Shown here: positions 20,348 through 61,316 of the stretch, piece after piece
Numbering within the stretch: the first letter of the stretch is position 1
Layout of the letters: each line of letters begins with the position of its first letter
NCBI GenBank assembly: GCA_047495785.1
Contig: JBLDXI010000004.1
Coordinates: 2,790,001 to 2,854,000 of the forward strand
Source of the DNA: Lepidodermella squamata
Taxonomy: Eukaryota; Animalia; Gastrotricha
Length of the DNA stretch: 64,000 nt
Reading direction: 5' to 3'
Notes under the pieces: generated by a model
Databases searched by the model: none
The model's input: only the letters and a program-made list of their open reading frames with translations
Told to the model about the DNA's origin: nothing
Translations under genes and position numbers: made by a program

Positions 20348-20449
20348 TACGAAAAAGAGCTTATTTATTTCATAAATATGAAATAAATAAGCTCTTTTTC
20401 GTAAGAACTTTTAACTTGTTGTTTCAATATTGAAACAACAAGTTAAAAG
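20348..20449. repeat. Two adjacent perfect AT-rich palindromes
   Basis: 20348-20403 has 27-bp arms and an AA loop. 20408-20449 is a 42-bp loopless palindrome. Confidence 0.9.
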
Positions 20450-25800: not shown

Positions 25801-25850
25801 CACAATCAATTTGATTCCATTTTGCCTCCCTCCCCGGGGGGAGGGAGGCT
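22815..25850 (+). repeat. Tandem array of a ~650-bp unit (~4.7 copies), each with a GC palindrome
   Basis: GATGGTTGCGCACCAAAGGTCCCAC recurs at ~22816, 23456, 24112, 24770 and 25410. TGCCTCCCTCCCCCGGGGGAGGGAGGCA occurs at 23273, 23929, 24587, 25227 and (variant) 25824. Confidence 0.95.
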
Positions 25851-28800: not shown

Positions 28801-31800
28801 AAAAATGCAAATTACTCCAAAATGGTCGCTCGAGCGACCAATGGAAAAATCGACGCTCACAAAATTCCCGCAACCTGTATATAGGCTTGGCCTATACCGT
28901 TAGAAATGGCGATTGCTTGCGCACATTCTAAAATTAACGCGCTGGCAATAGGACACAGTGGAGTGACGCGCGGCGCTAAAAATCGTTTTACACAGTACTA
29001 ATCAGCAACACAGTTTGCGCGCACACACCAAGTACACTTTGTAATTACCAGTGTAACCAATTTCTATTTTTTAATCACTGTCAGCAGGTACCAGTTTGGA
29101 TGTTATACCTATTAAAACGAATGGCGATAAATTCCGCATTCAACGGTGTAAAGCTCGTCTGTGAGCTATGCGCGCATCATGGTCAAAAATCGATAAAATC
29201 ATTTGAAAAATGCAAATTACTCCAAAATGGTCGCTCGAGCGACCAATGGAAAAATCGACGCTCACAAAATTCCCGCAACCTGTATATAGGCTTGGCCTAT
29301 ACCGTTAGAAATGGCGATTGCTTGCGCACATTCTAAAATTAACGCGCTGGCAATAGGACACAGTGGAGTGACGCGCGGCGCTAAAAATCGTTTTACACAG
29401 TACTAATCAGCAACACAGTTTGCGCGCACACACCAAGTACACTTTGTAATTACCAGTGTAACCAATTTCTATTTTTTAATCACTGTCAGCAGGTACCAGT
29501 TTGGATGTTATACCTATTAAAACGAATGGCGATAAATTCCGCATTCAACGGTGTAAAGCTCGTCTGTGAGCTATGCGCGCATCATGGTCAAAAATCGATA
29601 AAATCATTTGAAAAATGCAAATTACTCCAAAATGGTCGCTCGAGCGACCAATGGAAAAATCGACGCTCACAAAATTCCCGCAACCTGTATATAGGCTTGG
29701 CCTATACCGTTAGAAATGGCGATTGCTTGCGCACATTCTAAAATTAACGCGCTGGCAATAGGACACAGTGGAGTGACGCGCGGCGCTAAAAATCGTTTTA
29801 CACAGTACTAATCAGCAACACAGTTTGCGCGCACACACCAAGTACACTTTGTAATTACCAGTGTAACCAATTTCTATTTTTTAATCACTGTCAGCAGGTA
29901 CCAGTTTGGATGTTATACCTATTAAAACGAATGGCGATAAATTCCGCATTCAACGGTGTAAAGCTCGTCTGTGAGCTATGCGCGCATCATGGTCAAGAAT
30001 CGATAAAATCATTTGAAAAATGCAAATTACTCCAAAATGGTCGCTCGAGCGACCAATGGAAAAATCGACGCTCACAAAATTCCCGCAACCTGTATATAGG
30101 CTTGGCCTATACCGTTAGAAATGGCGATTGCTTGCGCACATTCTAAAATTAACGCGCTGGCAATAGGACACAGTGGAGTGACGCGCGGCGCTAAAAATCG
30201 TTTTACACAGTACTAATCAGCAACACAGTTTGCGCGCACACACCAAGTACACTTTGTAATTACCAGTGTAACCAATTTCTATTTTTTAATCACTGTCAGC
30301 AGGTACCAGTTTGGATGTTATACCTATTAAAACGAATGGCGATAAATTCCGCATTCAACGGTGTAAAGCTCGTCTGTGAGCTATGCGCGCATCATGGTCA
30401 AAAATCGATAAAATCATTTGAAAAATGCAAATTACTCCAAAATGGTCGCTCGAGCGACCAATGGAAAAATCGACGCTCACAAAATTCCCGCAACCTGTAT
30501 ATAGGCTTGGCCTATACCGTTAGAAATGGCGATTGCTTGCGCACATTCTAAAATTAACGCGCTGGCAATAGGACACAGTGGAGTGACGCGCGGCGCTAAA
30601 AATCGTTTTACACAGTACTAATCAGCAACACAGTTTGCGCGCACACACCAAGTACACTTTGTAATTACCAGTGTAACCAATTTCTATTTTTTAATCACTG
30701 TCAGCAGGTACCAGTTTGGATGTTATACCTATTAAAACGAATGGCGATAAATTCCGCATTCAACGGTGTAAAGCTCGTCTGTGAGCTATGCGCGCATCAT
30801 GGTCAAAAATCGATAAAATCATTTGAAAAATGCAAATTACTCCAAAATGGTCGCTCGAGCGACCAATGGAAAAATCGACGCTCACAAAATTCCCGCAACC
30901 TGTATATAGGCTTGGCCTATACCGTTAGAAATGGCGATTGCTTGCGCACATTCTAAAATTAACGCGCTGGCAATAGGACACAGTGGAGTGACGCGCGGCG
31001 CTAAAAATCGTTTTACACAGTACTAATCAGCAACACAGTTTGCGCGCACACACCAAGTACACTTTGTAATTACCAGTGTAACCAATTTCTATTTTTTAAT
31101 CACTGTCAGCAGGTACCAGTTTGGATGTTATACCTATTAAAACGAATGGCGATAAATTCCGCATTCAACGGTGTAAAGCTCGTCTGTGAGCTATGCGCGC
31201 ATCATGGTCAAGAATCGATAAAATCATTTGAAAAATGCAAATTACTCCAAAATGGTCGCTCGAGCGACCAATGGAAAAATCGACGCTCACAAAATTCCCG
31301 CAACCTGTATATAGGCTTGGCCTATACCGTTAGAAATGGCGATTGCTTGCGCACATTCTAAAATTAACGCGCTGGCAATAGGACACAGTGGAGTGACGCG
31401 CGGCGCTAAAAATCGTTTTACACAGTACTAATCAGCAACACAGTTTGCGCGCACACACCAAGTACACTTTGTAATTACCAGTGTAACCAATTTCTATTTT
31501 TTAATCACTGTCAGCAGGTACCAGTTTGGATGTTATACCTATTAAAACGAATGGCGATAAATTCCGCATTCAACGGTGTAAAGCTCGTCTGTGAGCTATG
31601 CGCGCATCATGGTCAAAAATCGATAAAATCATTTGAAAAATGCAAATTACTCCAAAATGGTCGCTCGAGCGACCAATGGAAAAATCGACGCTCACAAAAT
31701 TCCCGCAACCTGTATATAGGCTTGGCCTATACCGTTAGAAATGGCGATTGCTTGCGCACATTCTAAAATTAACGCGCTGGCAATAGGACACAGTGGAGTG

Positions 31801-34800
31801 ACGCGCGGCGCTAAAAATCGTTTTACACAGTACTAATCAGCAACACAGTTTGCGCGCACACACCAAGTACACTTTGTAATTACCAGTGTAACCAATTTCT
31901 ATTTTTTAATCACTGTCAGCAGGTACCAGTTTGGATGTTATACCTATTAAAACGAATGGCGATAAATTCCGCATTCAACGGTGTAAAGCTCGTCTGTGAG
32001 CTATGCGCGCATCATGGTCAAGAATCGATAAAATCATTTGAAAAATGCAAATTACTCCAAAATGGTCGCTCGAGCGACCAATGGAAAAATCGACGCTCAC
32101 AAAATTCCCGCAACCTGTATATAGGCTTGGCCTATACCGTTAGAAATGGCGATTGCTTGCGCACATTCTAAAATTAACGCGCTGGCAATAGGACACAGTG
32201 GAGTGACGCGCGGCGCTAAAAATCGTTTTACACAGTACTAATCAGCAACACAGTTTGCGCGCACACACCAAGTACACTTTGTAATTACCAGTGTAACCAA
32301 TTTCTATTTTTTAATCACTGTCAGCAGGTACCAGTTTGGATGTTATACCTATTAAAACGAATGGCGATAAATTCCGCATTCAACGGTGTAAAGCTCGTCT
32401 GTGAGCTATGCGCGCATCATGGTCAAAAATCGATAAAATCATTTGAAAAATGCAAATTACTCCAAAATGGTCGCTCGAGCGACCAATGGAAAAATCGACG
32501 CTCACAAAATTCCCGCAACCTGTATATAGGCTTGGCCTATACCGTTAGAAATGGCGATTGCTTGCGCACATTCTAAAATTAACGCGCTGGCAATAGGACA
32601 CAGTGGAGTGACGCGCGGCGCTAAAAATCGTTTTACACAGTACTAATCAGCAACACAGTTTGCGCGCACACACCAAGTACACTTTGTAATTACCAGTGTA
32701 ACCAATTTCTATTTTTTAATCACTGTCAGCAGGTACCAGTTTGGATGTTATACCTATTAAAACGAATGGCGATAAATTCCGCATTCAACGGTGTAAAGCT
32801 CGTCTGTGAGCTATGCGCGCATCATGGTCAAAAATCGATAAAATCATTTGAAAAATGCAAATTACTCCAAAATGGTCGCTCGAGCGACCAATGGAAAAAT
32901 CGACGCTCACAAAATTCCCGCAACCTGTATATAGGCTTGGCCTATACCGTTAGAAATGGCGATTGCTTGCGCACATTCTAAAATTAACGCGCTGGCAATA
33001 GGACACAGTGGAGTGACGCGCGGCGCTAAAAATCGTTTTACACAGTACTAATCAGCAACACAGTTTGCGCGCACACACCAAGTACACTTTGTAATTACCA
33101 GTGTAACCAATTTCTATTTTTTAATCACTGTCAGCAGGTACCAGTTTGGATGTTATACCTATTAAAACGAATGGCGATAAATTCCGCATTCAACGGTGTA
33201 AAGCTCGTCTGTGAGCTATGCGCGCATCATGGTCAAAAATCGATAAAATCATTTGAAAAATGCAAATTACTCCAAAATGGTCGCTCGAGCGACCAATGGA
33301 AAAATCGACGCTCACAAAATTCCCGCAACCTGTATATAGGCTTGGCCTATACCGTTAGAAATGGCGATTGCTTGCGCACATTCTAAAATTAACGCGCTGG
33401 CAATAGGACACAGTGGAGTGACGCGCGGCGCTAAAAATCGTTTTACACAGTACTAATCAGCAACACAGTTTGCGCGCACACACCAAGTACACTTTGTAAT
33501 TACCAGTGTAACCAATTTCTATTTTTTAATCACTGTCAGCAGGTACCAGTTTGGATGTTATACCTATTAAAACGAATGGCGATAAATTCCGCATTCAACG
33601 GTGTAAAGCTCGTCTGTGAGCTATGCGCGCATCATGGTCAAGAATCGATAAAATCATTTGAAAAATGCAAATTACTCCAAAATGGTCGCTCGAGCGACCA
33701 ATGGAAAAATCGACGCTCACAAAATTCCCGCAACCTGTATATAGGCTTGGCCTATACCGTTAGAAATGGCGATTGCTTGCGCACATTCTAAAATTAACGC
33801 GCTGGCAATAGGACACAGTGGAGTGACGCGCGGCGCTAAAAATCGTTTTACACAGTACTAATCAGCAACACAGTTTGCGCGCACACACCAAGTACACTTT
33901 GTAATTACCAGTGTAACCAATTTCTATTTTTTAATCACTGTCAGCAGGTACCAGTTTGGATGTTATACCTATTAAAACGAATGGCGATAAATTCCGCATT
34001 CAACGGTGTAAAGCTCGTCTGTGAGCTATGCGCGCATCATGGTCAAAAATCGATAAAATCATTTGAAAAATGCAAATTACTCCAAAATGGTCGCTCGAGC
34101 GACCAATGGAAAAATCGACGCTCACAAAATTCCCGCAACCTGTATATAGGCTTGGCCTATACCGTTAGAAATGGCGATTGCTTGCGCACATTCTAAAATT
34201 AACGCGCTGGCAATAGGACACAGTGGAGTGACGCGCGGCGCTAAAAATCGTTTTACACAGTACTAATCAGCAACACAGTTTGCGCGCACACACCAAGTAC
34301 ACTTTGTAATTACCAGTGTAACCAATTTCTATTTTTTAATCACTGTCAGCAGGTACCAGTTTGGATGTTATACCTATTAAAACGAATGGCGATAAATTCC
34401 GCATTCAACGGTGTAAAGCTCGTCTGTGAGCTATGCGCGCATCATGGTCAAAAATCGATAAAATCATTTGAAAAATGCAAATTACTCCAAAATGGTCGCT
34501 CGAGCGACCAATGGAAAAATCGACGCTCACAAAATTCCCGCAACCTGTATATAGGCTTGGCCTATACCGTTAGAAATGGCGATTGCTTGCGCACATTCTA
34601 AAATTAACGCGCTGGCAATAGGACACAGTGGAGTGACGCGCGGCGCTAAAAATCGTTTTACACAGTACTAATCAGCAACACAGTTTGCGCGCACACACCA
34701 AGTACACTTTGTAATTACCAGTGTAACCAATTTCTATTTTTTAATCACTGTCAGCAGGTACCAGTTTGGATGTTATACCTATTAAAACGAATGGCGATAA

Positions 34801-37800
34801 ATTCCGCATTCAACGGTGTAAAGCTCGTCTGTGAGCTATGCGCGCATCATGGTCAAAAATCGATAAAATCATTTGAAAAATGCAAATTACTCCAAAATGG
34901 TCGCTCGAGCGACCAATGGAAAAATCGACGCTCACAAAATTCCCGCAACCTGTATATAGGCTTGGCCTATACCGTTAGAAATGGCGATTGCTTGCGCACA
35001 TTCTAAAATTAACGCGCTGGCAATAGGACACAGTGGAGTGACGCGCGGCGCTAAAAATCGTTTTACACAGTACTAATCAGCAACACAGTTTGCGCGCACA
35101 CACCAAGTACACTTTGTAATTACCAGTGTAACCAATTTCTATTTTTTAATCACTGTCAGCAGGTACCAGTTTGGATGTTATACCTATTAAAACGAATGGC
35201 GATAAATTCCGCATTCAACGGTGTAAAGCTCGTCTGTGAGCTATGCGCGCATCATGGTCAAAAATCGATAAAATCATTTGAAAAATGCAAATTACTCCAA
35301 AATGGTCGCTCGAGCGACCAATGGAAAAATCGACGCTCACAAAATTCCCGCAACCTGTATATAGGCTTGGCCTATACCGTTAGAAATGGCGATTGCTTGC
35401 GCACATTCTAAAATTAACGCGCTGGCAATAGGACACAGTGGAGTGACGCGCGGCGCTAAAAATCGTTTTACACAGTACTAATCAGCAACACAGTTTGCGC
35501 GCACACACCAAGTACACTTTGTAATTACCAGTGTAACCAATTTCTATTTTTTAATCACTGTCAGCAGGTACCAGTTTGGATGTTATACCTATTAAAACGA
35601 ATGGCGATAAATTCCGCATTCAACGGTGTAAAGCTCGTCTGTGAGCTATGCGCGCATCATGGTCAAAAATCGATAAAATCATTTGAAAAATGCAAATTAC
35701 TCCAAAATGGTCGCTCGAGCGACCAATGGAAAAATCGACGCTCACAAAATTCCCGCAACCTGTATATAGGCTTGGCCTATACCGTTAGAAATGGCGATTG
35801 CTTGCGCACATTCTAAAATTAACGCGCTGGCAATAGGACACAGTGGAGTGACGCGCGGCGCTAAAAATCGTTTTACACAGTACTAATCAGCAACACAGTT
35901 TGCGCGCACACACCAAGTACACTTTGTAATTACCAGTGTAACCAATTTCTATTTTTTAATCACTGTCAGCAGGTACCAGTTTGGATGTTATACCTATTAA
36001 AACGAATGGCGATAAATTCCGCATTCAACGGTGTAAAGCTCGTCTGTGAGCTATGCGCGCATCATGGTCAAGAATCGATAAAATCATTTGAAAAATGCAA
36101 ATTACTCCAAAATGGTCGCTCGAGCGACCAATGGAAAAATCGACGCTCACAAAATTCCCGCAACCTGTATATAGGCTTGGCCTATACCGTTAGAAATGGC
36201 GATTGCTTGCGCACATTCTAAAATTAACGCGCTGGCAATAGGACACAGTGGAGTGACGCGCGGCGCTAAAAATCGTTTTACACAGTACTAATCAGCAACA
36301 CAGTTTGCGCGCACACACCAAGTACACTTTGTAATTACCAGTGTAACCAATTTCTATTTTTTAATCACTGTCAGCAGGTACCAGTTTGGATGTTATACCT
36401 ATTAAAACGAATGGCGATAAATTCCGCATTCAACGGTGTAAAGCTCGTCTGTGAGCTATGCGCGCATCATGGTCAAAAATCGATAAAATCATTTGAAAAA
36501 TGCAAATTACTCCAAAATGGTCGCTCGAGCGACCAATGGAAAAATCGACGCTCACAAAATTCCCGCAACCTGTATATAGGCTTGGCCTATACCGTTAGAA
36601 ATGGCGATTGCTTGCGCACATTCTAAAATTAACGCGCTGGCAATAGGACACAGTGGAGTGACGCGCGGCGCTAAAAATCGTTTTACACAGTACTAATCAG
36701 CAACACAGTTTGCGCGCACACACCAAGTACACTTTGTAATTACCAGTGTAACCAATTTCTATTTTTTAATCACTGTCAGCAGGTACCAGTTTGGATGTTA
36801 TACCTATTAAAACGAATGGCGATAAATTCCGCATTCAACGGTGTAAAGCTCGTCTGTGAGCTATGCGCGCATCATGGTCAAAAATCGATAAAATCATTTG
36901 AAAAATGCAAATTACTCCAAAATGGTCGCTCGAGCGACCAATGGAAAAATCGACGCTCACAAAATTCCCGCAACCTGTATATAGGCTTGGCCTATACCGT
37001 TAGAAATGGCGATTGCTTGCGCACATTCTAAAATTAACGCGCTGGCAATAGGACACAGTGGAGTGACGCGCGGCGCTAAAAATCGTTTTACACAGTACTA
37101 ATCAGCAACACAGTTTGCGCGCACACACCAAGTACACTTTGTAATTACCAGTGTAACCAATTTCTATTTTTTAATCACTGTCAGCAGGTACCAGTTTGGA
37201 TGTTATACCTATTAAAACGAATGGCGATAAATTCCGCATTCAACGGTGTAAAGCTCGTCTGTGAGCTATGCGCGCATCATGGTCAAAAATCGATAAAATC
37301 ATTTGAAAAATGCAAATTACTCCAAAATGGTCGCTCGAGCGACCAATGGAAAAATCGACGCTCACAAAATTCCCGCAACCTGTATATAGGCTTGGCCTAT
37401 ACCGTTAGAAATGGCGATTGCTTGCGCACATTCTAAAATTAACGCGCTGGCAATAGGACACAGTGGAGTGACGCGCGGCGCTAAAAATCGTTTTACACAG
37501 TACTAATCAGCAACACAGTTTGCGCGCACACACCAAGTACACTTTGTAATTACCAGTGTAACCAATTTCTATTTTTTAATCACTGTCAGCAGGTACCAGT
37601 TTGGATGTTATACCTATTAAAACGAATGGCGATAAATTCCGCATTCAACGGTGTAAAGCTCGTCTGTGAGCTATGCGCGCATCATGGTCAAAAATCGATA
37701 AAATCATTTGAAAAATGCAAATTACTCCAAAATGGTCGCTCGAGCGACCAATGGAAAAATCGACGCTCACAAAATTCCCGCAACCTGTATATAGGCTTGG

Positions 37801-38423
37801 CCTATACCGTTAGAAATGGCGATTGCTTGCGCACATTCTAAAATTAACGCGCTGGCAATAGGACACAGTGGAGTGACGCGCGGCGCTAAAAATCGTTTTA
37901 CACAGTACTAATCAGCAACACAGTTTGCGCGCACACACCAAGTACACTTTGTAATTACCAGTGTAACCAATTTCTATTTTTTAATCACTGTCAGCAGGTA
38001 CCAGTTTGGATGTTATACCTATTAAAACGAATGGCGATAAATTCCGCATTCAACGGTGTAAAGCTCGTCTGTGAGCTATGCGCGCATCATGGTCAAAAAT
38101 CGATAAAATCATTTGAAAAATGCAAATTACTCCAAAATGGTCGCTCGAGCGACCAATGGAAAAATCGACGCTCACAAAATTCCCGCAACCTGTATATAGG
38201 CTTGGCCTATACCGTTAGAAATGGCGATTGCTTGCGCACATTCTAAAATTAACGCGCTGGCAATAGGACACAGTGGAGTGACGCGCGGCGCTAAAAATCG
38301 TTTTACACAGTACTAATCAGCAACACAGTTTGCGCGCACACACCAAGTACACTTTGTAATTACCAGTGTAACCAATTTCTATTTTTTAATCACTGTCAGC
38401 AGGTACCAGTTTGGATGTTATAC
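25880..38423 (+). repeat. 405-bp tandem array, ~31 near-identical copies
   Basis: Exact 405-bp periodicity of the ORF track from 26265 to 38010. The only variant I noticed is one A/G site. Confidence 0.98.
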
Positions 38424-38798
38424 ATATTGCTACGTGAAACGTGAAATGTGAGATACAACGGTGCCAAAGGTGTTATGCACACATGTCATCCGACCACGTC
38501 TCGCTCAGTGGATGATTTGTAGTCGTCTGCGTCATCATGGCGTGCCGCGTTTCGGCTCAGCTACGTCTGATTAGCAATAGCAACGGTCTGCAGCCGCACG
38601 GCTGCGCAATCGACGACGTCACTGTAACGGTCGTCGAGCCTACACTGTCGTATTCTACATCGAACTACTTTATCGAGTTTGGAACAATTCGGATGCGTAT
38701 TTTTGTCATTTTTTGATACCTGTTTCTTGAAATATTTGCTTGTTATTAGAATCCTTTTCCATTTCATCACTTTAATTTTGTTTTGCTATCTGTTTCTC

Positions 38799-39942
38799 AT
38801 GGCAAAGCCGGAAGAGTACGTTTTATTGTTGGCCCATCAATAATTGGAAATAACTTTTTTGCGTTGCAGTTACTCGTTGGTTGGCATGTATCTTAAAACA
38901 AACAAACTCGCCCGCGCCTCTGAAGAAGTCAATATCGAAGCACGCCGCATAAGTCTCGATTCCGTTCCGTCAGAGCCTATCGATGGGCAGCGTATCGAGG
39001 GCATTCTTCTGTTTTCAAAGCGGCGCAGTGCAGATCAAAGCCGAGCAAAAGCAATCCCGAACAGTCCGAACATAAAGTCCAAAGTTGAAGGTGCCTACTT
39101 GAGGTTCATGGTTTTCGGGTAAGTGAATGATGAAACGATATGCTATTCCTTATATTTTCGCCCTTTATCCTAGATGTGTCGATGAAAGCGACGAAGCATT
39201 TGTTGTCGTCGTGAAGGACACACCGGCTGGTCGTCTAGCGCTGTCGTTCGGCGATCAAATAACACCTGGGGCTCGGCTGTCAATTAGCAACCCCGTATCC
39301 GTGAGCCAGTGGAAAACGATGAAGGTAATTGGCACTGATTGCCTTGTTCCTGCGGTGTCGCCCGTCCCCAGGAGCGTTGTCGAGCTCCCGTTCGAAGGCA
39401 TCCCTCTTGCTGAGCGATTTCACGCCTTTCGAGCAGACATCGATGTATTGGAGGTCATGGAGGTGGCTTTTTGCACTGCATGCGGCCGAAGCTGTGATGG
39501 CAGGTATGGCACCTGTTGCAGTTGTGTCGGCGGTTTTCGCTTTGTCACCATTAAAACGCTGCCTGGCATTCGCGTGAAAGCGGCGGCTTTTCGTGGTCTC
39601 AGCGCTGCTGTCTACTATTCTGTAGAACTTGCCCGCCGCTTGGTCCCCGAGCAAGTGCTTCAAGGCGACTGCGACTACGGCATCGTGACTCGCCACATTC
39701 GCCGGTCGATCGAGGCGCACCGCGGCGGTTTTCGAGCTATTTTCTGGGCGAAACCGGCAAAAGCACCGGATTCTGATGTACCGTCGTTTCATCGGATCCA
39801 CATCGCACGCCTCATTCCTTTGGGTGACCCCCTCCCGATGCTAGCGATTGCTGATGCCGTTGTGCCACCAGTGCCGGTACAGGGTGGCAATGTTGTCGAA
39901 AATTTGAACGGCGATCAACCGCCAGCTGCTACAGACAATTGA
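38799..39942 (+). CDS. Putative ssDNA-binding OB-fold protein with a Cys-rich Zn ribbon (RPA70C-like layout), 3 exons, ~344 aa
   Basis: Exons 38799-38815, 38870-39118 and 39174-39942 splice in frame. Beta-rich segments, CTACGRSCDG..TCCSC, and a terminal GGFRAIFWAKP...HIARLIP strand. The fold assignment is inference. Confidence 0.5.
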
Positions 39943-40276: not shown

Positions 40277-40726
40277 TTAGAGCGAATCGTAGAAGTCCGG
40301 GTTCAAATCCATGACCTCCACGAGCTGGGATTTTAGTTTGTAGAGCTTGCTTATTGGGAATGACAGGTTTAAAAATTTGGGGAATTCTTTATACTCCTGA
40401 TAGGTCAGGAGCATCGTCATACACCACGTCTTGCCCCAACCATGCTTGAGGCTTATCTTCGCCAAAAATGCGCTCTGAGAGTCTGCCGATTCCCTTCTTA
40501 ACATATCAATCGCTTGGCCGACGGCGAAGGCCTGATGGAGCTTCACCGACGCCATCGACTCCAGAACATGCTTTCCCTGGTGAACGTATTTTATGGCCTC
40601 ATCGATTGAGCATTCGGGTACGAAGTCATCCATGGTCGCGTCGTCAGGGTGCGTGCCTACATAAAGTTTCCTAACGGCCTTTTCGACTTGCTCAGGCGTC
40701 TTGAGTGAGTGCTCGATGCCACTGAT
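40277..40726 (-). CDS. Terminal exon of a small alpha-helical protein of unknown function (5' exons apparently lost)
   Basis: Acceptor tttgattctttAG at 40727, then 149 open codons: ISGIEHSLK...FAVGQAIDMLRRE...FLAKISLKHGWGKTWCMTMLLTYQEYKEFPKF. Convergent poly(A)-like signals near 40110-40150. Confidence 0.6.
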   Translation of the reverse strand: MSGIEHSLKTPEQVEKAVRKLYVGTHPDDATMDDFVPECSIDEAIKYVHQGKHVLESMASVKLHQAFAVGQAIDMLRRESADSQSAFLAKISLKHGWGKTWCMTMLLTYQEYKEFPKFLNLSFPISKLYKLKSQLVEVMDLNPDFYDSL

Positions 40727-40770
40727 CTAAAGAATCAAATACTAAAATACGCCAATTATAAGCCAAAGAA

Positions 40771-43700
40771 ATGCATATAGTCACCCGACACGTATGTTCC
40801 AATGCTGGAGAGAGATGCCTCAAGCAACGCGGTGAAAACGGGGAAGAAATGTGCCGTGTTCGAGCTCATCCATGCTGTGAGGACTACTTTTATGAAGAAA
40901 AGGAGAAGTTATACGAAGAGGAAGTTTATGAGAAACTCGAATTAGCCGGGCTTGCTGAACGTGTTGCAGTTGGTGAAAACGGCGATAAGAAGTGGCGAAT
41001 CAAGTATGACAAACTGAGAGCTGGCGTCCATCATTACCCTCTTCGTCGATTCGAATGTGGTGTCAAAATGTTGCCTACTATTCCCTTATTTGCTGTTATG
41101 CTACGCTGCTCGTCTAATATACAAAGATGCGATGCAAGATTCATGGTGAGCTACCTCGTTAAGTATTGTGCCGGCAAAGAAGTGCGATACAAGCCGCCGA
41201 TAAAGAACACAAAAAATCCCGAAGAAATCGTATTCGATAAATCGACAGGGAATCTTCCTAATTTGAAAATTTCCGGAGTTGCTATAAACGAACAAAAGCG
41301 ACAAGTGAAATCGAAGCAAAAGCATCAGTCTAGCATCATGGAGGTAGCCGCAACAGAAATGCACTGGGTGGTCTGCGAATTCCCCTATACGTATACAAAT
41401 GTCGTGCACGTTCATTTGAACACTCAGCCACCAGAACACCGCCTCAACTACAAATCTCAAGTGAAGCGTGGGCCTTTAAAACCAGGTTAAAATGAATCAT
41501 ATTGACCTAGCCATAATATTTTCGGTTTTCATCATAGGTGTCAATCCCGTTCCAAACGACCCAAACGCATCAAGATACCACCTTAACCAACCTTGGCGCT
41601 TGTTCACTCGTGAGCAGATTCAACTGGCCCTTGAGTACATTGATACCAAAATACAACCCGGAGCAACGGAACGATGGAATATCCGGCCGCCGGAGTCGAT
41701 GATCTTTTCGAACCCTGAAATATTTCATCAAGTCTTTATAGCTTCAAAAGAAAAACAAGCGAATGACATCAGTGTCGAGGTTCACAACTCACCAATTCGA
41801 GACGCTTTGAATCGTGACTATAAAATCCGAGACTGCAGTTTGCAAGTTGGTCTTCGTTTTTTGGAAAGTCAGCCCGAGGATCATCCAGCACGCTCGGCTT
41901 TAATCTACATTTTCAGGTCACTAATACGTGGAGACGAAGATCTAGCAGATCGTTACCTCCATCGGTCAGGCTATGTTCGCGCGATAACAGTTCCATCCAC
42001 GATAACACCCTTCAATCGGCAGAAATTCTTGTATCACGCAATCATGACGCTAGGAAGCATGGAGAATGAGATGCAGGCTTTTTCATCACCTGTTTTCGCA
42101 ATCAATTTCGCAAATGCTCATCTGGTCTCACCTCCAGAATTGTTCGACGGTGCATTGGTCCAGCCGGATCTACAGCGTGATGTAATTGTCATTTTCCGGA
42201 GATTAATAACTGAACAGATGGTTTGGCTGCCTGTTTCTGCTAAACGACTCGGAACTTACATTTTAAAAACTTGGGAGACTCTCCAAGACTATTTTTTCGG
42301 CTCGCATAGCAATGATCATGATGTACCTGCTGTTTCGGCCTACGCTTTGAAAAGCCAAGCTAACGGCAAAATTTGTGATGCGGAGAGAATCTTTAAAGAA
42401 AGTCTTGTTCAAACTTGCCATGCGCAACTCAGCAGCAAAGTCGCTCTGCCTTCTATTTCGGAACTGCTAAATGCGAAAATTGAGAGTCCTGCAATATGGA
42501 CGCCCTCCATCTGCGAACGCTCTGGTAATGAGTTAAATTACTTAATACTCCTTCTTATTATTTCTACTCCTATTTACAGGTCTGACCGAAGAGTGTATTG
42601 CACAACAAGAGATGGCACTCAAGCATGGCCAGCGTAAAATCGATTCATTACTTTGCCATCGCGATGGCTTCCGTCATACCGTCTACGTTGGTCCACCGGG
42701 AGCTGGCAAAACCTTTCTTGCCCAAATTGTGGCTCTCTACGCTATTTCAAAAGGCTTCAACGTCTGTTTAACGGCGCTGACATCGGAGAGAGCCCGGTAT
42801 CTTGGTGGGCGGCATCTTCATTTAATTTTCCCTTTGCGTGTCATGCAGTGCTCTTACACACATGCTATGCTGGAGGCACAAGAATGCATTCGCTCCCTTG
42901 GCCGAGATCCTTTGAAAGCTGAGCTTCTGTACCGCATCGACGTATTTATCATAGAAGAAATCGGTCTCATTTCCGCTGAAATGTTCGCGGCACTTGACGC
43001 CGTCTTGAAATACGTCATGGGGAACGATTTAAAGTTTGGGGGGAAAATGGTCATTGCTACTGGCGATCACGCACAGCTGCAGCCAGTTCTCGGAAGACCA
43101 TTCTGGCTATCCACTCACCTGCTATTCAGCTTCGATGTTGTCGTACTTACTCACTACGTGAGGTCGGCGGAAGATTCTCAACTTCAAGAGATACTACATC
43201 TACTGCGCTTGCCGATTCTCAACGAAAGTCAACGACAATGGGTCACATCCATCATCATGAACAGGGCACAGTTCTTTTCATCCTGGGAAAACGTTCCTGA
43301 CGGATTGATGCGTATAGTTACAACGCGCGGGGCCCAAAAAGCAGTCATACGACAGTATCTCCAAAAAAAAGAGTCACAAGTTCACATGGTCAAATGCGTC
43401 GCTGTCGATGAGTTCCAGCGTGCAGCCGACGATTGGAAACCTACGACGAATAAAGCTCACGTAAACAAACTTGACAACGTGTGCTTGGAACCTCAAGAAC
43501 TGTTCTTATTCGTCGGAGAATATGTCTGCATGACATATAATAACGTCGTTGACGATCCAGCTTCTTCGTTTTCGCAAGGTCAACTCGCCATTATAGTCAG
43601 TATGCCGACTGATATTTCTCATTGCAAGGCCAAAGTAACAGTTCGCCTCGTACCCCCAGGCATTCGACCTACTGAACATGTTGCCGACGAATGGCCATTG

Positions 43701-44584
43701 GTAGATATTCCTCGACATCGCGGTATCTCGGTCATTATTGGCCCTGATGCAACGCGTGCGCGGCGCGTACAGTTCCCGTTTCGCTACTATGTTTGTTCAA
43801 CGGTTCACAGGATAATGGGCTCAACTTTGGAAGAAGGCGTTGCTATACAAATTTCGGATGTCGACCGAAATTTCAGAATGTGGGAAAAGGCGCAGTTCTT
43901 GGTGATGGTCTCCAGATGCAGGAACCTAAGTCGTGTCGCCTTCGTTACATCTAGCAAGGCTGCAACCGCTCGCGCAATTGACGGCATTTTGATGAAGGAG
44001 AGCCCGTACGACAAGGCTATCATCAACCGACTGCAGCAATTGAGCGTGCTAACTGCTGAGCAGCCTACCGTGGATATCGACGCGCCGGCTTTTTACATAA
44101 CGAATTCCATCTCGCCTACAGTAGAAAACGGCGTTGTCTACCATATTATCTCCCAAACACGCCCGTTTGTTTCCTATGTAGGCGAGACGATGTTCAGCGC
44201 CGAGAAACGTCTCCGAGAGCACAACGGCGGTATGACATCTATATGTTCAACTTGAATTTTTAATTCCATGCTTTTATTTCAGGCTGTGGTGCTGACTTCA
44301 CTCGCGGAGACACCTGGCTGCTGTATGGAATTATTCACGGTTTCGAAAATGCTGCGGATCGTAAAAAATTTGAAACCAGGGTTCACAGAAAGCTAGAATC
44401 GACTTTTTTTCCGTGGCACGTTCGAGCAGCTGTAACCGAGCTGGTGGCATCAATAAATGTTCATTGCCCAGCCAATCAGCAGTTGGCTATCGTTCAGTTC
44501 GGGAGATTGGACGAGCAGCGCGTTAGGCAACTCACCAATGCACGGATTCCTACGAGGCCGACAACCTTCGTCAAAGAAGATTAA
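40771..44584 (+). CDS. Rep-motif-3 / Pif1-RecD-type SF1B helicase / GIY-YIG nuclease fusion (4 exons, ~1217 aa)
   Basis: Exons 40771-41485, 41538-42524, 42580-44229 and 44283-44584 splice in frame. Motifs: PTIPLF..MLRCSSNIQRC....VSYLVKYCAGKE; GPPGAGKT; IIEEIG; GDHAQLQPV; RRVQFP..STVHRIMGSTL; VMVSR; VYHIISQ..VSYVGET..EKRLREHNGGCGADFT..TWLLYGIIHGF..RKKFE. Confidence 0.85.
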
Positions 44585-44749: not shown

Positions 44750-45965
44750 AGGGTGGGGCGAATAAATAAAACAATTCATTTATAGCTTCACTAAAAATAA
44801 TCCGAATTTGAAAATTTTTGCGGCAACCGGCAGCTGGTGCCCCGTTTTTCTAGATGGTTGCGCACCAAAGGTCCCACAGGGACGGAGTCCCCAATACAAA
44901 ATGCCGCATGGCGCTTTAGCTATCGCTGCCAAGCGTATGAGGTATATGGCGGTGCTGCATTTTTCGCGTAGGGAAACGAATATTTCAGTTATAAATATGA
45001 AAAAAATACTGAAAAATCGGCGAGCCTTTTAAGTCTCAGGTAAAAACTTTCCAGCATAATCGCAATTATTCCTGATTTTTAATAAATTAAAAACGAAAAA
45101 ATCGCTTTATCGATGACGCAACAACTTGACCTAACGGCGCTAGGTCACCGGTGCCGTACGCCACCACCGCCGCGCGCGCGACGGTCGCGCGCGCACACGA
45201 CACCTATTGCGTAATCGCCGGCGCACTGCTATAACCGCGCGCACACAGTGGCAGCGCTAGGAGCGCAACAGGTAGTGGCGCTCGAAACTTTTTATATGCC
45301 GTTAAAAACTTTTTATGAATTACCGGCCGCCTCCCTCCCCCGGGGGAGGGAGGCATCAATTATCTTTCTTGAAAAACGTGACATTCAACCCCGGTTTGGA
45401 GGGTGGGGGAAATAAAAACCGGCCGATCTTATTTCATCTATAACTTCACCAAAAATAATCCGATTTTGAAAATTTTTGCGGCAACCGGCAGCTGGTGCCC
45501 CGTTTTTCTAGATGATTGCGCGAACCAACCCGATAGGGTTCCCCTAGCGGCGGAGCCGCAGCCTGAACCGGAGGTCCAGCGCCTCTCTCTCAACTTCGCC
45601 GGTCGAGGCGACAATGGTAGAGGCGTTTTGCGCTGGACGAAAAACGAACCTAGGGAAACGAATTTTAACGATAAAAATATGGAAAAATAAGTCGTAGATA
45701 GATCTTGTTTTGAAGTTATGGGAAAAGTCTTTTTAGCCAATTTCACCGATCGGCTGATTTTTGGCGATTTTTTATTCATAAAAAAATGGAGAACTCCTCA
45801 TTAATATTCATGAGCTGCTTACGCCGCCGTCTGGGTCACGGTTACCGGCACCCTCATGACCGAGGTTAATTACCTCACACGCGAGAGCCGGGTCGTTGCG
45901 ATGCGCCACTTCGAAATGTCAATATAAAACCAGTTTGGCGGCCCTCCCTGGGGGGAGGGCTGCAT
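44750..45965 (+). repeat. Second block of the ~650-bp palindrome repeat, same orientation as 22815-25850
   Basis: 44850-45510 is nearly identical to 24110-24770. Palindrome at 45329-45354, with a degenerate copy near 45940-45963. Confidence 0.9.
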
Positions 45966-46086
45966 CAGTGACATTCTACAAAACATTCTGCATCGAACGG
46001 TCTAAATTTTGGTGCTAGGCGATAAACGGTTGATTTTATATCGAATTTACAAGTTGCGCACACTTGAAAAAATGGCCCTCGCTGAC

Positions 46087-48740
46087 GGTGTGTGAAATTT
46101 TCAGTGCGCGGATGACACCCAGATAGGTGCGGAATTTGTCGTGACAAAGTCGGATTTTTAGATACTAGAAAAGACGGCCGATTTTTTGGTACCAAAACCG
46201 CCGCGAGATTCGCAAGATTTCCTCTGAATATAGCGTTTGGCGCGCGACTGATTTTTAGTTAAAATTAAAATTTGAATTTTTTCGAGTTTCGTCAATTTTT
46301 TTGACACCTCACCCGGGTAGCGGTCATGTTTAATTGCACGTAGAATGTAGCAAATTTTGCGCTGAATTTTTATAGACCAACCGCACTATCGTAGCCCTTA
46401 TGGTTTTGGAGCTATAGGAGGCGCGGTAAATCGCGTTTTTAAGCCTATTTTTAGTGCGCGGCGGCGCTCACACACTCACTGAGAGTCGGTTTCTGTCAAA
46501 TTTTGGACACATGCAGCAGTTCTGTGCGCATATCCAAATAACACTGGTCGACGTAGAATTTCAAGACGAATCGAACAAGCCTAAGATCATCGTCGTAGCC
46601 CTCATAGTTTTTTGCCTATAGGAGGCGCGGTCGATCCACCTTAAAATTTCGAAATTTCGTTGTTTTTGTGAATTTTTTCGCGACGGTTTGGAAGAGACCC
46701 GGTGTAACATAACAACCATTTCTAGTACAAAATTTGACGGGCTTTCGAGAGATGAAAACCGCATGCCAACACCTATCACAGTTTTTTCCCAATAAGCCGA
46801 GCGGTAAAATATGAGATAAAAAACAGAATTGGTAAATCTCGAAATTTCGCTTCTACAAATCCAGGTCATATTTACCCGCAACTTCAGTGACGAATAATCA
46901 TGAGATAGAGGTAACTTGAGACGCTATATTGAATGGTAGACGCCACATGTTCACAGGGCACGCCCATTTGACGAACCGCCCTTGACAAAGTCAAATTTTT
47001 TTAAATTGTCGACTTACTTTACACTCTCATTTCAGTGGTATGGCTGGTTCGCGCTAATACCTTTATGATGCCAACGCTTAGAGCAAAGTCCGCTGGCCAT
47101 TTTGAGACCAGGCTGGTCGTTATACCCGGTGTGTGAAATTTTCAGGGCGCGTGTGACACCCTGATAGGTGCGGAATCTGTCTTGACAAAGTCGGTATTTT
47201 AGATACTAGAAAACACGGCCGATTTTTTGGTACCAGAACCGCCGGGAGATTCGCAAGATTTCCTTTGACTATAGCAGTTTGCGCGCGATGTATTTTTAGT
47301 GAAAATCAAATTTTATATTTTTTCGAGTTTCGCCAATTGTTTTGACATCTCACCCTGGTAGCGCTCATGTTTGAATACACCTAGAATGTAGGAAATTTTG
47401 CGCTGAATTTTTAGAGCCCAACCGCATAATCGTAGCGCTTATGGTTGTCGAGCAATAGAAGGCGCGGCAAATCGCGTTTTCAACCAATTTTTAGTGTGCG
47501 GCGGCGCTCACACACTCACTCAGAGCCGTTTTCTGTTAAATTTTCGACACGCGTAGCAGTTTTGTGCGCACATAGACATTATATAGGCCGACGTAGAATT
47601 TCAAGACGAATCGAACGACACTAGGCCCATCGTCGTAGCCCTTATAGTTTTTTGTCTATAGAAGGCGCGGCCGATCCACCTTAAAATTTCGAAATTTCGA
47701 CGTTTTTGAGAATCATTTCACGAGGATTAGGAATAGTCTCGGTTTAATAAAATAACCATGTCAAGTACAGAATATGACGGGCTTTCGAGAGATGAAAACC
47801 GCATGCCAACACCTTTCACAGTTTTTTGCCAATAGGCCACGCGGTATAATATGAGATAAAAAACAAACTGAGTAAATTTTCTAATTTCGATTATTTAATT
47901 CTGGGTGTAATTTAACTGCGAATTCAATTACGAATATTCATGAGAAATAGGTAACTCAAGGCGAGCCTTCAACTGGTCCACGCCCCACATTCACAGGACG
48001 CACCCATTTGACGCCACACCATTTGTCAAGTCAAATTTTCATAATTTTGTTGACCAACTTTGCACTCGCATTTTTTCTTTCACCGAAGTTGCGCTGATAT
48101 ATTAATGATTCAAACGCGTGGAGCATATTCAGCTAAGAATTTTGAGACCAGGCTGGTCGTTGTAGCCGCCGTAGTGATGGTGTTTTTCGCTGCGCGGTAA
48201 AACTTGGTTGTCCATATTTTTAGTGTGCGCACTCACGCAGTTAGGCTTACTCATTGCATTTTTGAGTGGTATGCAATATTTGTGCGCAAAGTTAGTTGCA
48301 ACCATCATGTGCAGAAAAATGCGAGGAATCGAACAATCCTACGCCCATCGTCGTAGCCCTCATAGTATTCTGCCTATGAGCAGGCGCGGTATAATTTGTT
48401 TCGACCCACCGTAAAACTTTCGAATTTCAATGTTTTTGTGAGTTTTTTCGCGACGGTGTAGAAGCGTCCCGGCGTAATATAATAGCCATGTCTACTACAA
48501 CATTTTGCGTGCTATTTTATGGTGAAAACCGCATGTCAATACCCCTCATGGTTTTTTGCCAATAAGGCACGCGGTATAATTTGAGATAAAAAACAGACCA
48601 AGTAAATTTTGAAATTTTGCTTCACCAATTCCGGGTCATTTTTATCTGGAATTGTATTGACGAATTTTCTTAACAAATAGATAACTCGAGGCGGCCTATC
48701 GAATGGTATATGCCCCATGTTCATAGGCTGCACCATGTGG
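46087..48740 (+). repeat. Diverged ~1040-bp tandem repeat (two full units and a partial third)
   Basis: GGTGTGTGAAATTTTCAG.GCGCG at ~46087 and ~47128; TTTGAGACCAGGCTGGTCGTT at 47101 and 48141; internal sub-repeat ATCGTAGCCC..ATAG..GGCGCGG. Confidence 0.85.
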
Positions 48741-55051: not shown

Positions 55052-56213
55052 ATGAGTGGACAGCCTCCGATTCTGAGGAAGAACTGGAACTACGAAGACG
55101 GCGTCCCGGATAGCACTCTTCGCCACTGGGCGAAGAAAACCCCAGTTATCGATCCACGAGCTCAAGCGGCAAGATTTCAATCTCCCCACGTTGATCAGCC
55201 CCAACCAGCCCAAATCATCGACCTGACAGGGTCCGACGGGTCCGACAATGAATCTGTGATTGAACCGGAGGATGAATTGCCAGCGGATAACTTTGACCCG
55301 GATATGTCAGATCTGGTGGACAGCGTTGATGGCGACGAAAGCATGCCGTTTCAACACTTGCCCCATTCTAATGAACAGCTGCATGGCTTGAAAACGACTA
55401 TGACCTTCGGGTGCCTGCTGTTCATGTTGATGGCTTTTTGCATACGATTCAAGCTTTCGTGGACCGCTATGGAGGCGCTCGTTGGTATTTTCGTTCAAAT
55501 TTTCCCTGAAGCCAATTTTTTCCAACAAATTAATACGATACACAAATTACGCAGGAAATTGCTGCCCTGGCACAAACAAGTTGACATGGTTTACGTTTGC
55601 AATTGCGTAAATTCTCAACCTAGAAAGCTCAACAATAATGGAATGAAACGGCGCTGTCTGAGATGCAAAGCCGGCGGGTCATTCAGCTGCATTCCTCTTA
55701 CAACTCGAATAGCAAGCAGCTTGAAAAATCACCCAGAACTAACAGGCCCGTTAGAAACTAAGTTTTTTTTCGACGGCGTTAAGCCCTTTCATTCCACGGC
55801 TCGCAGTATCTGGTATACTATTTTTTAAATTGCTGGTCTCAGTGTGCGAAGTAGGATGCTCGAGTTGGGGGTACTTTCAACCATTTTCTGGCGCGAAATT
55901 TCAGACCAAAGGGTCCCCCCTGTGGTTTTTTTCGGTTTTTCTTGCCGAGAATTCTCGAGCTGGGAGTACCGTACTCCCAGTCTCCCCGCTACTTCGCGCA
56001 CTGGCTGGTCTGGATCAATTTTTTCTAACCGGAATTTACGTCGGCTATGGACACCCGGATGCTAATCAGGTTCCGAAACCGTTCGTCGAAGAAATTCGCC
56101 AGTTACTGGACACCGGGGTGAAATGTGGCAATACAACCGTACAGCTTCAGTGCCCGTTTTGCTGTTGCGATGGCCCCGCAAATCTGAAATTCGGAATGCC
56201 ACGTATCCGCAAG
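55052..56213 (+). CDS. CMC/EnSpm (Tnp2-like) transposase, 5' exons
   Basis: YVCNC..RCLRC; FFDGVKPFHSTARSIW; LTGIYVGYGHP...KPFVEEIRQL..G...CCCDGPA. The following intron contains the nested element. Confidence 0.75.
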
Positions 56214-57922
56214 GTATTATGATAAATTTTGTTGCTTTATTTTGATGAAATTTTGAAATATCAAAATTTTGAAAATTCCGAAAATAGAATTGAAATAAAA
56301 TTGGAAAATCTGTCAGAAATTTATCAAAATTAGTTAAAATTATTTTAATATCAAACATAAATTTTCAATTATTGTTTTACACATGTGTCATCGGTGGCAC
56401 TTGACAACCTTTTTAAATCTTGCCGAAACCATGCTTTAGCAGCCTTAGAAACGACTTGAAATATCAGAGCAAAAATCGTAGAAAGTAAGAATGTTTTTCG
56501 GAATTAATCCTTTTTTCTTATGGAAAAAGTTGACATTAAACCGTAGGGTTTTAACAATTTCGAACACCTCGTGGAGGAATTCAGTGCCGGTTTGTTATCA
56601 GCCCAAACTATTGATTTCTCAGGATGGCGAATACCAAAGTTCGATATTTTCGATTTTTTTTCGATTTGTTTCAATGCCGTCTTATATCATCTTATATCAT
56701 TCGAAGGCCCAAATACCCAAGGAAAAAAAAGGGATCATCCTGGCCTGATGTAGATGTCATCTACATGAGACCGTCACATCTCGGCTGCATGTAAGACACA
56801 TGTAAGATGCATGTCAAACAAGTGTTCTAGGTGGGTACAAGATGCATCTTAGATAGCTTGGGCATTCGTCTAGGTACAATCTACAATGAATCTTAAATGC
56901 AGCTCTGATGCATCTTACATCGGTCTTACATGAGTTTTACATCAGCAATTGATGCATCTTGTATTAGTGTTTGGTTGCATCTTGGATGCATCTTACACAT
57001 ATCTTAGTTGAATAAGAGACAAGTCTGAGGCTGATGTTTATAAAATATGTGAGATTCCCTGTAAATTGCACTGCGCACTGTCTGGACTTTGATTGTTAGC
57101 TCATTTGTGCTGAAATAAAAATGAGGCACCCTAATGAATGACTTGGAAAATAACCCGCCGCAGTGCAACTAATAATAACTAACACTGCGGCAAAAGACAA
57201 CCTAGAAAAATTACGCTGTTTTAAAAATATTTTTCGATTAAGATATTAATAATTTATTTTTGATTGAAAATTTATTTTCTCAATTCTACAAATGATTTTC
57301 ACATTTTGCCGACGTGGCAGTTATAACCGTTTTGGGTCATTTTCAGCCGTTATTTTTTTTAGCCGCGTTTTTCAAATTTTCAAACCTGAATAGCTTTCCC
57401 CAGCCCACACTTCTCACCTATACTATACTGCTTAATGCTTAGTACTACGTGGCTAATGGTTCATGCTGCAATTTCAAACGCATCAAAATGTTTTTTAATA
57501 GAACTTGGATGCTCACTTATTTTGAGTACACATGTTGTTTTCTATAAGCTCAGTCCCCCTGAATCCATCATACTATTCATCATATTTATTTTCTTGCTCC
57601 TAGATCGAGTGTGTTCCGCTGGCAATACACTTTGCCCGGCATACGAGTAATTTAGTATAAACTAAACTCAGAATGCAGGAACACCTTTGTGGCACGATTG
57701 ACATTGTAAGTACTGAGTAAAACAACAGCGAGTGTTTCGCGCTATTATTTGTACTCATCGCGTGCCAGCAAATCTTGATTTTACACAGAAAATCGCGATG
57801 ATAAAAAAAATTTATGTTACTGAGCGCGCAACGAAAACTACTTTGTTTATGCAAGAACAAGTTGCGCGGAATACCTTATTACGATTATTTTTCAACTTTT
57901 AGAATTTTTTGTTTAAAACTGC

Positions 57923-60900: not shown

Positions 60901-61316
60901 CTCGGTCACACGCTGTGCTATTCGTTCATCCTACCACAGGTGTTGTAACAGTCGCCGAAATTATGTGTTTTTTCTATGGCGATGGCGGCTCTGTATTTGC
61001 TGTTATGAAGAAATACGAAATTGACGAATCCGAAATTTTGCTCAATCGCGTAAATGCTCTTCCTGAGCATTTCAATTTCGAGTACGAGGAGCTACTGCTG
61101 GGTCTACTTCAAGCCTTCGCAAACCCCCGCGCCGTACGAGCTGCCAGATGCTATCTCATTGGCGACATATCAGCTAATCGCCCAGCCGAGTACGAGGCTC
61201 TGAGGGTTGATAATAATATCGAAATCACCAAGGAACGTGTAGTTCTATTGCCAGCATCACATCAAAATTTGAATCGATGCTATGCCATTCCTTGGCATCT
61301 CGACGAGGAGAATTGA
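57923..61316 (+). CDS. CMC/EnSpm transposase with an acidic Ser-rich N-terminus (multi-exon, frameshift near 58330)
   Basis: LNADGAP...SIWP, GLWQGIKKP, VGDTPAR..HNSEYPCPDCH, GDTLHVGWEG, HCSGHL..HG..STFFSEG. Confidence 0.85.

Follow-up and report, generated by a model that had tools for sequence, protein, structure and literature searches.

A probable remnant of a Helitron-like transposase gene joins a Pif1-type helicase to an SLX1-type GIY-YIG nuclease domain in Lepidodermella squamata

A four-exon gene model at the locus

The analysed DNA is a stretch of 64,000 nucleotides from the gastrotrich Lepidodermella squamata (GenBank assembly GCA_047495785.1, contig JBLDXI010000004.1, positions 2,790,001 to 2,854,000 of the forward strand), hereafter the window, with positions counted from its first nucleotide. 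At 40771-44584 (+) it carries a predicted four-exon gene encoding 1217 aa, which begins at or before 40771. The locus most probably represents the 3' 3.65 kb of a Helitron-like rolling-circle transposase gene, from a lineage in which an OTU protease found in some members, a Rep domain (HUH, Y2), a linker, a Pif1 helicase and a GIY-YIG nuclease follow one another in a single protein. Joining 40771-41485, 41538-42524, 42580-44229 and 44283-44584 creates a frame of 3654 nt with 1217 codons and one terminal stop. The gene model comprises the following features.

40771..41485 (+): exon A, putative remaining C-terminal part of a Helitron-type Rep domain (HUH endonuclease)
41486..41537 (+): intron 1, 52 nt, GT..AG, phase 1, 29% GC; the alignment of relatives is collinear across it
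41538..42524 (+): exon B, Rep-to-helicase region, conserved within the family, with BLASTP and tblastn matches to relatives
42525..42579 (+): intron 2, 55 nt, GT..AG, phase 1, 25.5% GC
42580..44229 (+): exon C, complete Pif1-type SF1B helicase, then the first half of the GIY-YIG domain from ~44130
44230..44282 (+): intron 3, 53 nt, GTATGA...TTTCAG, phase 1, 26% GC, with an in-frame stop at 44253-44255 inside it
44283..44584 (+): exon D, rest of the GIY-YIG domain with the Trp and the Glu of KKFE, ending at ~44386, then a family-conserved helical tail and a TAA stop at 44582-44584
44130..44386 (+): SLX1/URI-type GIY-YIG catalytic core interrupted by intron 3, recognised by Pfam, by a family profile against PDB and by the fold of a relative

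The original prediction had the gene start at 42580 and noted that the open reading frame (ORF) ends at 44255, so that excision of 44230-44282 would be needed to complete the nuclease. Unspliced, the ORF 42612-44255 indeed closes at 44255. Removal of intron 3 fuses ...REHNGG to CGADFT... in frame and the reading continues through to the stop at 44582-44584. The effect of the splice was assessed with a C-terminal hidden Markov model (HMM) built from the C-termini of 19 relatives, with the window rows excluded. The spliced C-terminus scores 105.6 bits as a single domain spanning HMM positions 6-136, against 47.4 bits for the unspliced ORF end (positions 6-49) and 46.4 bits for exon D by itself (positions 49-136). 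Because these two ranges meet, the nuclease halves abut exactly. The 44230-44282 splice is also the top scorer among 10 in-frame, stop-free GT..AG choices, with the runner-up at 95.0 bits. In an alignment of family members (A1), both window pieces occupy adjacent columns of uninterrupted homologues with no gap, and exon D stays open over 100 codons in precisely the frame that the splice predicts. Intron 3 is like introns 1 and 2 in size, phase and base composition, and its 26% GC contrasts with 49% in the flanking exons. Solely from homology and splice signals, we strongly infer that the 44229/44283 splice is used, and the proposed completion of the nuclease was thus borne out at this level. 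The start at 42580 did not hold up. Exons A and B join in frame and are collinear with relatives, hence 42580 is an exon boundary and the gene reaches at least 1.8 kb further upstream.

The Pif1-type helicase

Exon C matches the Pfam models PIF1 (1.2e-14) and AAA_30. The PIF1 match is confined to the N-terminal half of the exon, and matches to helicase sequences in PDB are likewise restricted to that half. An AlphaFold model of exon C (predicted local distance difference test, pLDDT, 87) finds Pif1 from five species as best structural matches, from E 1.5e-27, with template modelling (TM) scores normalised to the target of 0.72-0.78 that include the 2B/SH3 domain. The Helitron transposase Helraiser (7lcc) follows at E 4e-21, and RecD2 and Dda rank later. 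A structural match to PIF1, which had been put forward as a check, was therefore obtained. The helicase motifs are located as follows.

42690-42713 (+): Walker A (GPPGAGKT)
42942-42965 (+): Walker B (FIIEE)
43056-43085 (+): GD..Q motif
43758-43778 (+): RR.Q motif
43797-43826 (+): T.H...G motif (TVHRIMG)
43902-43922 (+): SR motif

Across 88 relatives, the Walker A Lys, the second Walker B Glu and the GD..Q, RR.Q, T.H...G and SR motifs show little or no variation. At the first Walker B position, 52 of these relatives have D and 36 have E, while the second E is invariant. IIEE and TVHRIMG had originally been singled out as deviations from Helitron Pif1, the latter in comparison with SINKSQG in the canonical Helitron of the same window. 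The motifs are where they were said to be, and SINKSQG lies in 4326-5060 (-), but the deviations occur family-wide rather than being peculiar to this gene. Since they are common across the 88 relatives, both are best seen as family traits and give no sign of decay. The Pif1 signature between motifs II and III (..FGG....GD..QL.PV) is present as well, with FGGKMVIATGDHAQLQPV aligning with FGGLTVVIGGDFRQCLPV of the canonical Helitron. Identity between the two helicases in the window is 26-29%, in short stretches only.

The GIY-YIG nuclease domain

The nuclease is apparently intact, with a predicted SLX1-type GIY-YIG core. Its first half alone reaches 21.3 bits (E 3.4e-4) against Pfam GIY-YIG (PF01541), for which the threshold is 22.6 bits, and the same model is matched by 19 of the 21 members of alignment A1. 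When the A1 profile was compared with all PDB sequences, SLX1 came first (4xlg at 1.3e-13, 7cq2 at 1.3e-12), followed by 6seh and the plant HIGLE protein 7wme. Five SLX1/HIGLE chains fall between 1.3e-13 and 1.4e-10, and bacterial UPF0213 proteins rank after them. The fold was assessed on the domain of relative P0002, the closest uninterrupted relative, which shares 40% and 30% identity with the two pieces in the window. Its AlphaFold model (pLDDT 87) shows an alpha/beta GIY-YIG fold according to PDB structure matches. The top 11 PDB matches are all SLX1/HIGLE, with probabilities of 0.98-1.00, TM of ~0.5 over the 155-residue query and about 16-20% identity in the fold alignments. SLX1 is thus the top match both by profile and by the relative's fold, which is the outcome that the original prediction had proposed to look for.

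The catalytic positions are retained in the window. The domain contains the Tyr of GVVYHII (44130-44150), the Y-V-G of SYVGET (44172-44189), the Arg, His and Asn of KRLREHN, the Trp of DTW and the Glu of KKFE (segment at 44360-44386). VVYHII and SYVGET (44130-44189) place the GIY and YIG tyrosine motifs ~10-11 residues apart. In the profile alignment, the window residues fall on Y14, Y26/G28, R36, H40/N41, W60 and position 79 of 4xlg, which agrees with the earlier claim that the Y, YxG, R, H and E positions are kept. Position 79 is the catalytic glutamate of SLX1. For the Glu of KKFE to belong to the nuclease domain, the 44229/44283 splice is required. In A1, the catalytic positions Y18, Y30, G32, R41 and H45 are each conserved at 90% or more.

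The C-terminal RING/zinc-finger domain of SLX1 binds SLX4. Nothing of this kind follows the core in the window gene, where the ~60-65 remaining residues contain a single Cys, no Cys/His pattern and no Pfam match. The lack of a RING domain implies an SLX1-type catalytic domain and not an SLX1 orthologue. The label SLX1-type given by the original prediction is therefore appropriate for the catalytic core and does not extend to a whole SLX1 protein.

A Rep remnant and a truncated 5' end

Exons A and B have no significant match in Pfam or NCBIfam, and their assignment comes from comparison with relatives. BLASTP aligns exon A with residues 1171-1372 (E 5e-32) and exon B with residues 1394-1714 (E 1e-12) of relative P0005, a protein of 2363 aa. 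Exons C and D continue collinearly with its residues 1719-2273 and 2275-2317. Exon A retains the two-tyrosine (Y-x-x-x-Y) motif SYLVKYCAGKE at 41149-41181, of which the first Tyr is invariant in an alignment of full-length relatives (A2). In tblastn searches with nine full-length relatives, homology starts at 40768-40789, with one exception at 41059. This onset lies within ~20 nt of an ATG at 40771, and a stop at 40759-40761 stands just upstream. Only the C-terminal ~1150-1230 residues of the nine relatives were found, and their first ~440-2470 residues have no tblastn match anywhere in the 64 kb. The same searches found neither Rep motif I nor the HUH motif throughout the window.

The window copy is a 5'-truncated, non-autonomous member of its family. 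Lacking Rep motif I and the HUH motif, it is unable to launch rolling-circle transposition. What remains of the gene contains no stop or frameshift, pointing to a recent truncation or, less likely, to domestication. If expressed from the ATG at 40771, the product would contain the helicase and the nuclease without the HUH motif. At most, the copy could supply a helicase-nuclease in trans, or it could be inert.

An open frame of ~150 codons at 40277-40726 (-) abuts the truncation point. It has no significant match in Pfam or NCBIfam, with a weak match to DDE_Tnp_ISL3 (E 0.033), and may be a piece of a different element marking the breakpoint.

Relatives in animals and metagenomes

Relatives were collected by exhaustive HMMER search with exon C, and the counts refer to cluster representatives. 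At E<1e-3 the search returned 4685 representatives, of which 226 reach E<1e-30. Many of the relatives are 2000-3000 aa long with the exon C match near the C-terminus. Named sources are Styela clava (several loci), Hyalella azteca, Cyprideis torosa, Priapulus caudatus and Myxine glutinosa, so that hosts cover tunicate, crustacean, priapulid and hagfish records in addition to many metagenomes. Neither the exon C search nor a word-based search found an orthologue closer than 46% identity, and the word-based search gave no relative above 45%. An exact look-up of the 547-aa ORF in public assemblies had no match. The nearest relatives come from invertebrates or metagenomes, which together with the introns of 52-55 nt speaks against a human source. 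By Pfam, the relatives' architecture is Helitron_like_N, PIF1 and GIY-YIG, in some cases with an N-terminal OTU protease. A Rep domain upstream of a Pif1-like helicase in one ORF is thus the arrangement seen in the relatives, with which the window gene is collinear. An APE domain is listed in none of 60 full-length relatives, and Pfam finds none in the window gene.

Among 116 relatives whose sequence extends 70 aa or more past the helicase, 115 have GIY-YIG. Pairwise identities of helicase and nuclease are correlated (Spearman 0.445, reached in 0 of 500 permutations), a value that shared ancestry alone can inflate. The near-constant presence and the co-variation with the helicase argue that the nuclease is integral to the lineage and not a passenger.

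The Rep domain differs strongly from the Pfam Helitron model. Eight full-length relatives (A2) share the motifs F.TLT.ND (motif I), EFQ...H-x-H and YL.KY..GKE. Comparison of the family Rep with the Rep of the canonical Helitron in the window by hhalign gives E 1.1e-3 and a probability of 20%, with motif I and EFQ aligned. The domain is identified as Rep from the relatives' Pfam matches, from these motifs and from the weak hhalign result.

Signs that the family is mobile

The gene of relative P0205 occurs on eight contigs, which come from eight samples. Comparison of these contigs reveals a block of ~28.2 kb with sharp ends, of which the left one meets five different flanks and the right one four.

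L006:~5741 to L014:~19321 (one metagenome contig, JGI 3300066682 Ga0611999_0387): ~28.2-kb element with P0205 and upstream ORFs

Sharp ends with differing flanks indicate that the lineage is mobile and that its elements can be giant. The ends form an imperfect inverted repeat, whose score was reached by 30 of 1000 shuffles, and tandem repeats lie inside both ends (660-bp near the 5' end, 17-bp near the 3' end). The element carries fragments of DOT1-like genes and has no obvious target-site duplication. Published features of HLE2 elements include short terminal inverted repeats and OTU (PMC11417382). The P0205 element resembles them in its terminal inverted repeats and, through some relatives, in OTU. 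No DNA similarity was found between the 28-kb element and the window. In Styela clava, there are several paralogous loci, and some clusters at 90% have up to 40 members.

Surroundings of the gene in the window

Copies of a ~658-bp repeat, at 22813-25678 (four tandem units) and at ~44750-46090 (about two), delimit the block in which the gene lies. The segments 24034-24780 and 44775-45521 of this repeat are 96% identical. Each unit contains a palindrome of ~26 nt, GCCTCCCTCCCCCGGGGGAGGGAGGC, for example at 45329-45354. A variant with 12-nt arms around a central GG, GCCTCCCTCCCCGGGGGGAGGGAGGC, is located at 25825-25850, just before a tandem array. The original prediction mentioned a 28-bp palindrome, which is probably this 26-nt sequence. 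The array itself covers 25880-38428 with 31 copies of a 405-bp unit that are 99-100% identical. Every unit contains a perfect 18-nt palindrome, TGGTCGCTCGAGCGACCA. Outside the array, the window has nothing that matches the unit. A GC-only palindrome, GCGCGCGCGAC-G-GTCGCGCGCGC, occurs at 45172-45194, ~0.6 kb downstream of the stop codon. Motifs of the GAGCGAC type, found at a relative's termini, in the 405-bp palindrome and in the 3' untranslated region, were considered as Rep sites and rejected: GCGAGCGAC occurs twice against 0.29 expected, and 4 of 100 shuffles match this.

The 405-bp array stops 460 bp before a Cys-rich gene that precedes the truncated transposase gene.

38886-39118, 39174-39942 (+): Cys-rich two-exon gene, from ORFs and splice signals, with a 55-nt intron at 39119-39173

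Its predicted product contains the motif C..CDGRYG..C.C and has no match in Pfam/NCBIfam, PDB or a set of 5.8 billion proteins. By tblastn, a homologue (27% identity, E 6e-10) was found on an unrelated metagenome contig (L001, 20683-21336, -), where it follows a full-length Rep-helicase-GIY-YIG gene 3.3 kb downstream. The Cys-rich gene may thus be an accessory gene of the same transposon lineage.

Other mobile elements are found further away. The ORFs of the canonical Helitron RepHel cover 4323-11555 (-), with 176 bits to Helitron_like_N and 228 bits to PIF1. Its helicase is split by the ORF of a retrotransposon without long terminal repeats (APE and reverse transcriptase) on the same strand at 5390-8053, and the remainder of the helicase (Pif1 2B and C-terminal part) continues at 4326-5060 (-). 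Transposase ORFs of the Mutator type (Mutator-like element, MULE; PF10551, E 2.4e-11) are located at 20414-22857 (-). Downstream of the 658-bp repeats, 46086-47776 holds two ~1040-bp repeat copies of 83-88% identity with internal sub-repeats of 30-49 nt. A run of ORFs without Pfam matches at 55052-61316 (+) looks like another transposon gene. It includes ORFs of 258 aa, of 143 aa (Ser/Glu-rich, 57923-58354) and of 844 aa (58782-61316, +), the last being acidic at its N-terminus and containing Cys-rich segments. Scans of the window with Rfam and for tRNAs returned nothing.

Weighing the interpretations

Several observations weigh against reading the locus as the remnant of a Helitron-like transposase gene from a separate lineage. 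Homology of the Rep domain is weak, with Helitron_like_N scores of 18-32 bits in relatives for a cutoff of 28.9. The A2 Rep profile has no match among PDB sequences at E<0.4, and Helraiser is consequently undetected at the sequence level. A single copy of the element is present in the window, and its ends are not definable from one copy. All three introns were placed by homology and splice signals alone, and the helicase and nuclease activities are predicted for every member of the family. The lineage is set apart from Helitron (HLE1) and Helentron/Helitron2 (HLE2) by architecture and not by phylogeny. Finally, an ORF of 1217 codons without a stop or frameshift in a truncated copy would also fit a domesticated gene.

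Domestication is the strongest of the alternatives, though we consider it unlikely. A helicase-nuclease might have been exapted from the transposon by the host, which would have dropped Rep and kept the Pif1-SLX1-like pair for its usefulness, for example in repair or in defence against related elements. The uninterrupted frame, the GT..AG boundaries kept by all three introns, the presence of all family-invariant helicase and nuclease residues and an ATG right at the truncation point would be expected of such a gene. However, the uninterrupted frame is equally explained by a recent truncation. The gene is surrounded by a graveyard of transposons and satellites, among them the 405-bp array, the repeats of ~658 bp, a MULE and a Helitron split by a long interspersed nuclear element. 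The searches turned up no orthologue closer than 46% identity, which gives no sign of a conserved host gene, and exon A retains a Rep tyrosine motif that would now be useless.

A captured passenger without a role in transposition, as proposed for a Sphagnum HLE2 family in the HELIANO paper (PMC11417382), is a very improbable origin of the GIY-YIG domain. Helitron-like elements are known to capture gene fragments, and the sole published mention that we found terms the domain captured (PMC11417382). Yet 115 of 116 relatives, which come from distant animal phyla, have the domain at one and the same position, fused directly to the end of the helicase. Its identities rise and fall with those of the helicase, and its catalytic positions are conserved in A1. 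We give similarly little credence to an unused splice, by which the product would stop at 44255 with half a nuclease as a helicase-only remnant or dead pseudogene: the copy is truncated and may be silent, and the splice was deduced without RNA, but exon D is open for 100 codons as the splice predicts, scores 46.4 bits to the second half of the family domain and follows an intron of the same size, phase and base composition as introns 1 and 2.

The preferred interpretation thus remains a truncated transposase gene of a Rep-Pif1-GIY-YIG lineage. The biological importance of the window gene itself is probably small, because it is truncated, non-autonomous and located in a repeat-rich region. The family as a whole is a branch of Helitron-like transposons that is widespread and has hardly been described. 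More tentatively, Rep-Pif1-GIY-YIG elements might be an old, animal-wide rolling-circle lineage that is unrecognised in the current classification and in which the SLX1-type nuclease is an obligatory third catalytic module. If true, such transposition would include a branch-resolution or strand-cleavage step beyond what HUH chemistry alone provides. Annotations of animal genomes and metagenomes currently list family genes as PIF1-like helicase or as GIY-YIG endonuclease; they should be counted as transposon genes.

A possible role of the nuclease in transposition

Cellular relatives of the SLX1-like nuclease are structure-selective and cleave flaps, forks and junctions. In full-length elements, Rep would nick one strand at the element end and hold this strand via a tyrosine, and the 5'-3' Pif1-type helicase would unwind the Rep-bound strand. 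The SLX1-like nuclease might then add a cut that HUH chemistry cannot make, either a nick in the target or the second strand, or the trimming of flaps, junctions or branches. This role of the nuclease in transposition is our inference from domain content. The original prediction had drawn an analogy with the APE domain of Helentrons, by which the nuclease may nick targets or resolve branched or rolling-circle intermediates. The analogy agrees with the architecture of full-length relatives (Rep, helicase and nuclease, some with OTU and none with APE), and on the side of function it is conjectural.

There is still no settled account of how Helitron-like elements deal with their second strand and with the target DNA, and the APE domain of Helentrons hints at an answer. 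That this lineage independently fixed a different nuclease, of a type with which cells cut flaps and junctions, at the same position argues for a genuine mechanistic requirement for an additional cut. The family also offers a compact natural helicase-nuclease fusion for in vitro work.

Comparison with known systems

Canonical Helitrons (HLE1, represented by Helraiser, 7lcc, and by the copy at 4323-11555 (-) in the window) share Rep motif I, the HUH motif and the two-tyrosine motif with full-length relatives of the window gene, as well as a Pif1-type fold. The relatives differ by adding a C-terminal nuclease, and the window copy by having neither motif I nor HUH. The distance is also reflected in the Helitron Pfam models, against which family members score 18-32 bits (Helitron_like_N) and 40-55 bits (PIF1), where the canonical Helitron of the window reaches 176 and 228 bits.

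SLX1 (of SLX1-SLX4) and plant HIGLE provide the best profile and fold matches to the nuclease and have Tyr, Tyr-x-Gly, Arg, His-Asn, Trp and Glu at the same positions. Unlike these stand-alone subunits, the family domain is covalently fused to a helicase, and no RING/zinc-finger follows the core. Among transposons, GIY-YIG nucleases in eukaryotes have been attributed to Penelope-like elements (PMC5718144). These retroelements are the other class of eukaryotic transposons known to have such a nuclease, but they have a reverse transcriptase, whereas the family described here has Rep and helicase domains and no reverse transcriptase. For Helitron-like elements, a Sphagnum HLE2 family with GIY-YIG was termed captured in one sentence (PMC11417382). 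Beyond this remark, no account of a Helitron-like architecture with GIY-YIG/SLX1 was found in the searchable literature, Repbase excepted.

Helentron/HLE2 elements, with Rep, helicase and APE and often OTU, come closest in overall design. Shared features are a giant single ORF running from Rep over a Pif1-like helicase to a C-terminal nuclease, with OTU in some members. The P0205 element as one relative of the family also has imperfect terminal inverted repeats and subterminal tandem repeats. The main difference lies in the nuclease itself, as the family carries an SLX1/URI-type GIY-YIG domain in the place taken by APE in Helentrons.

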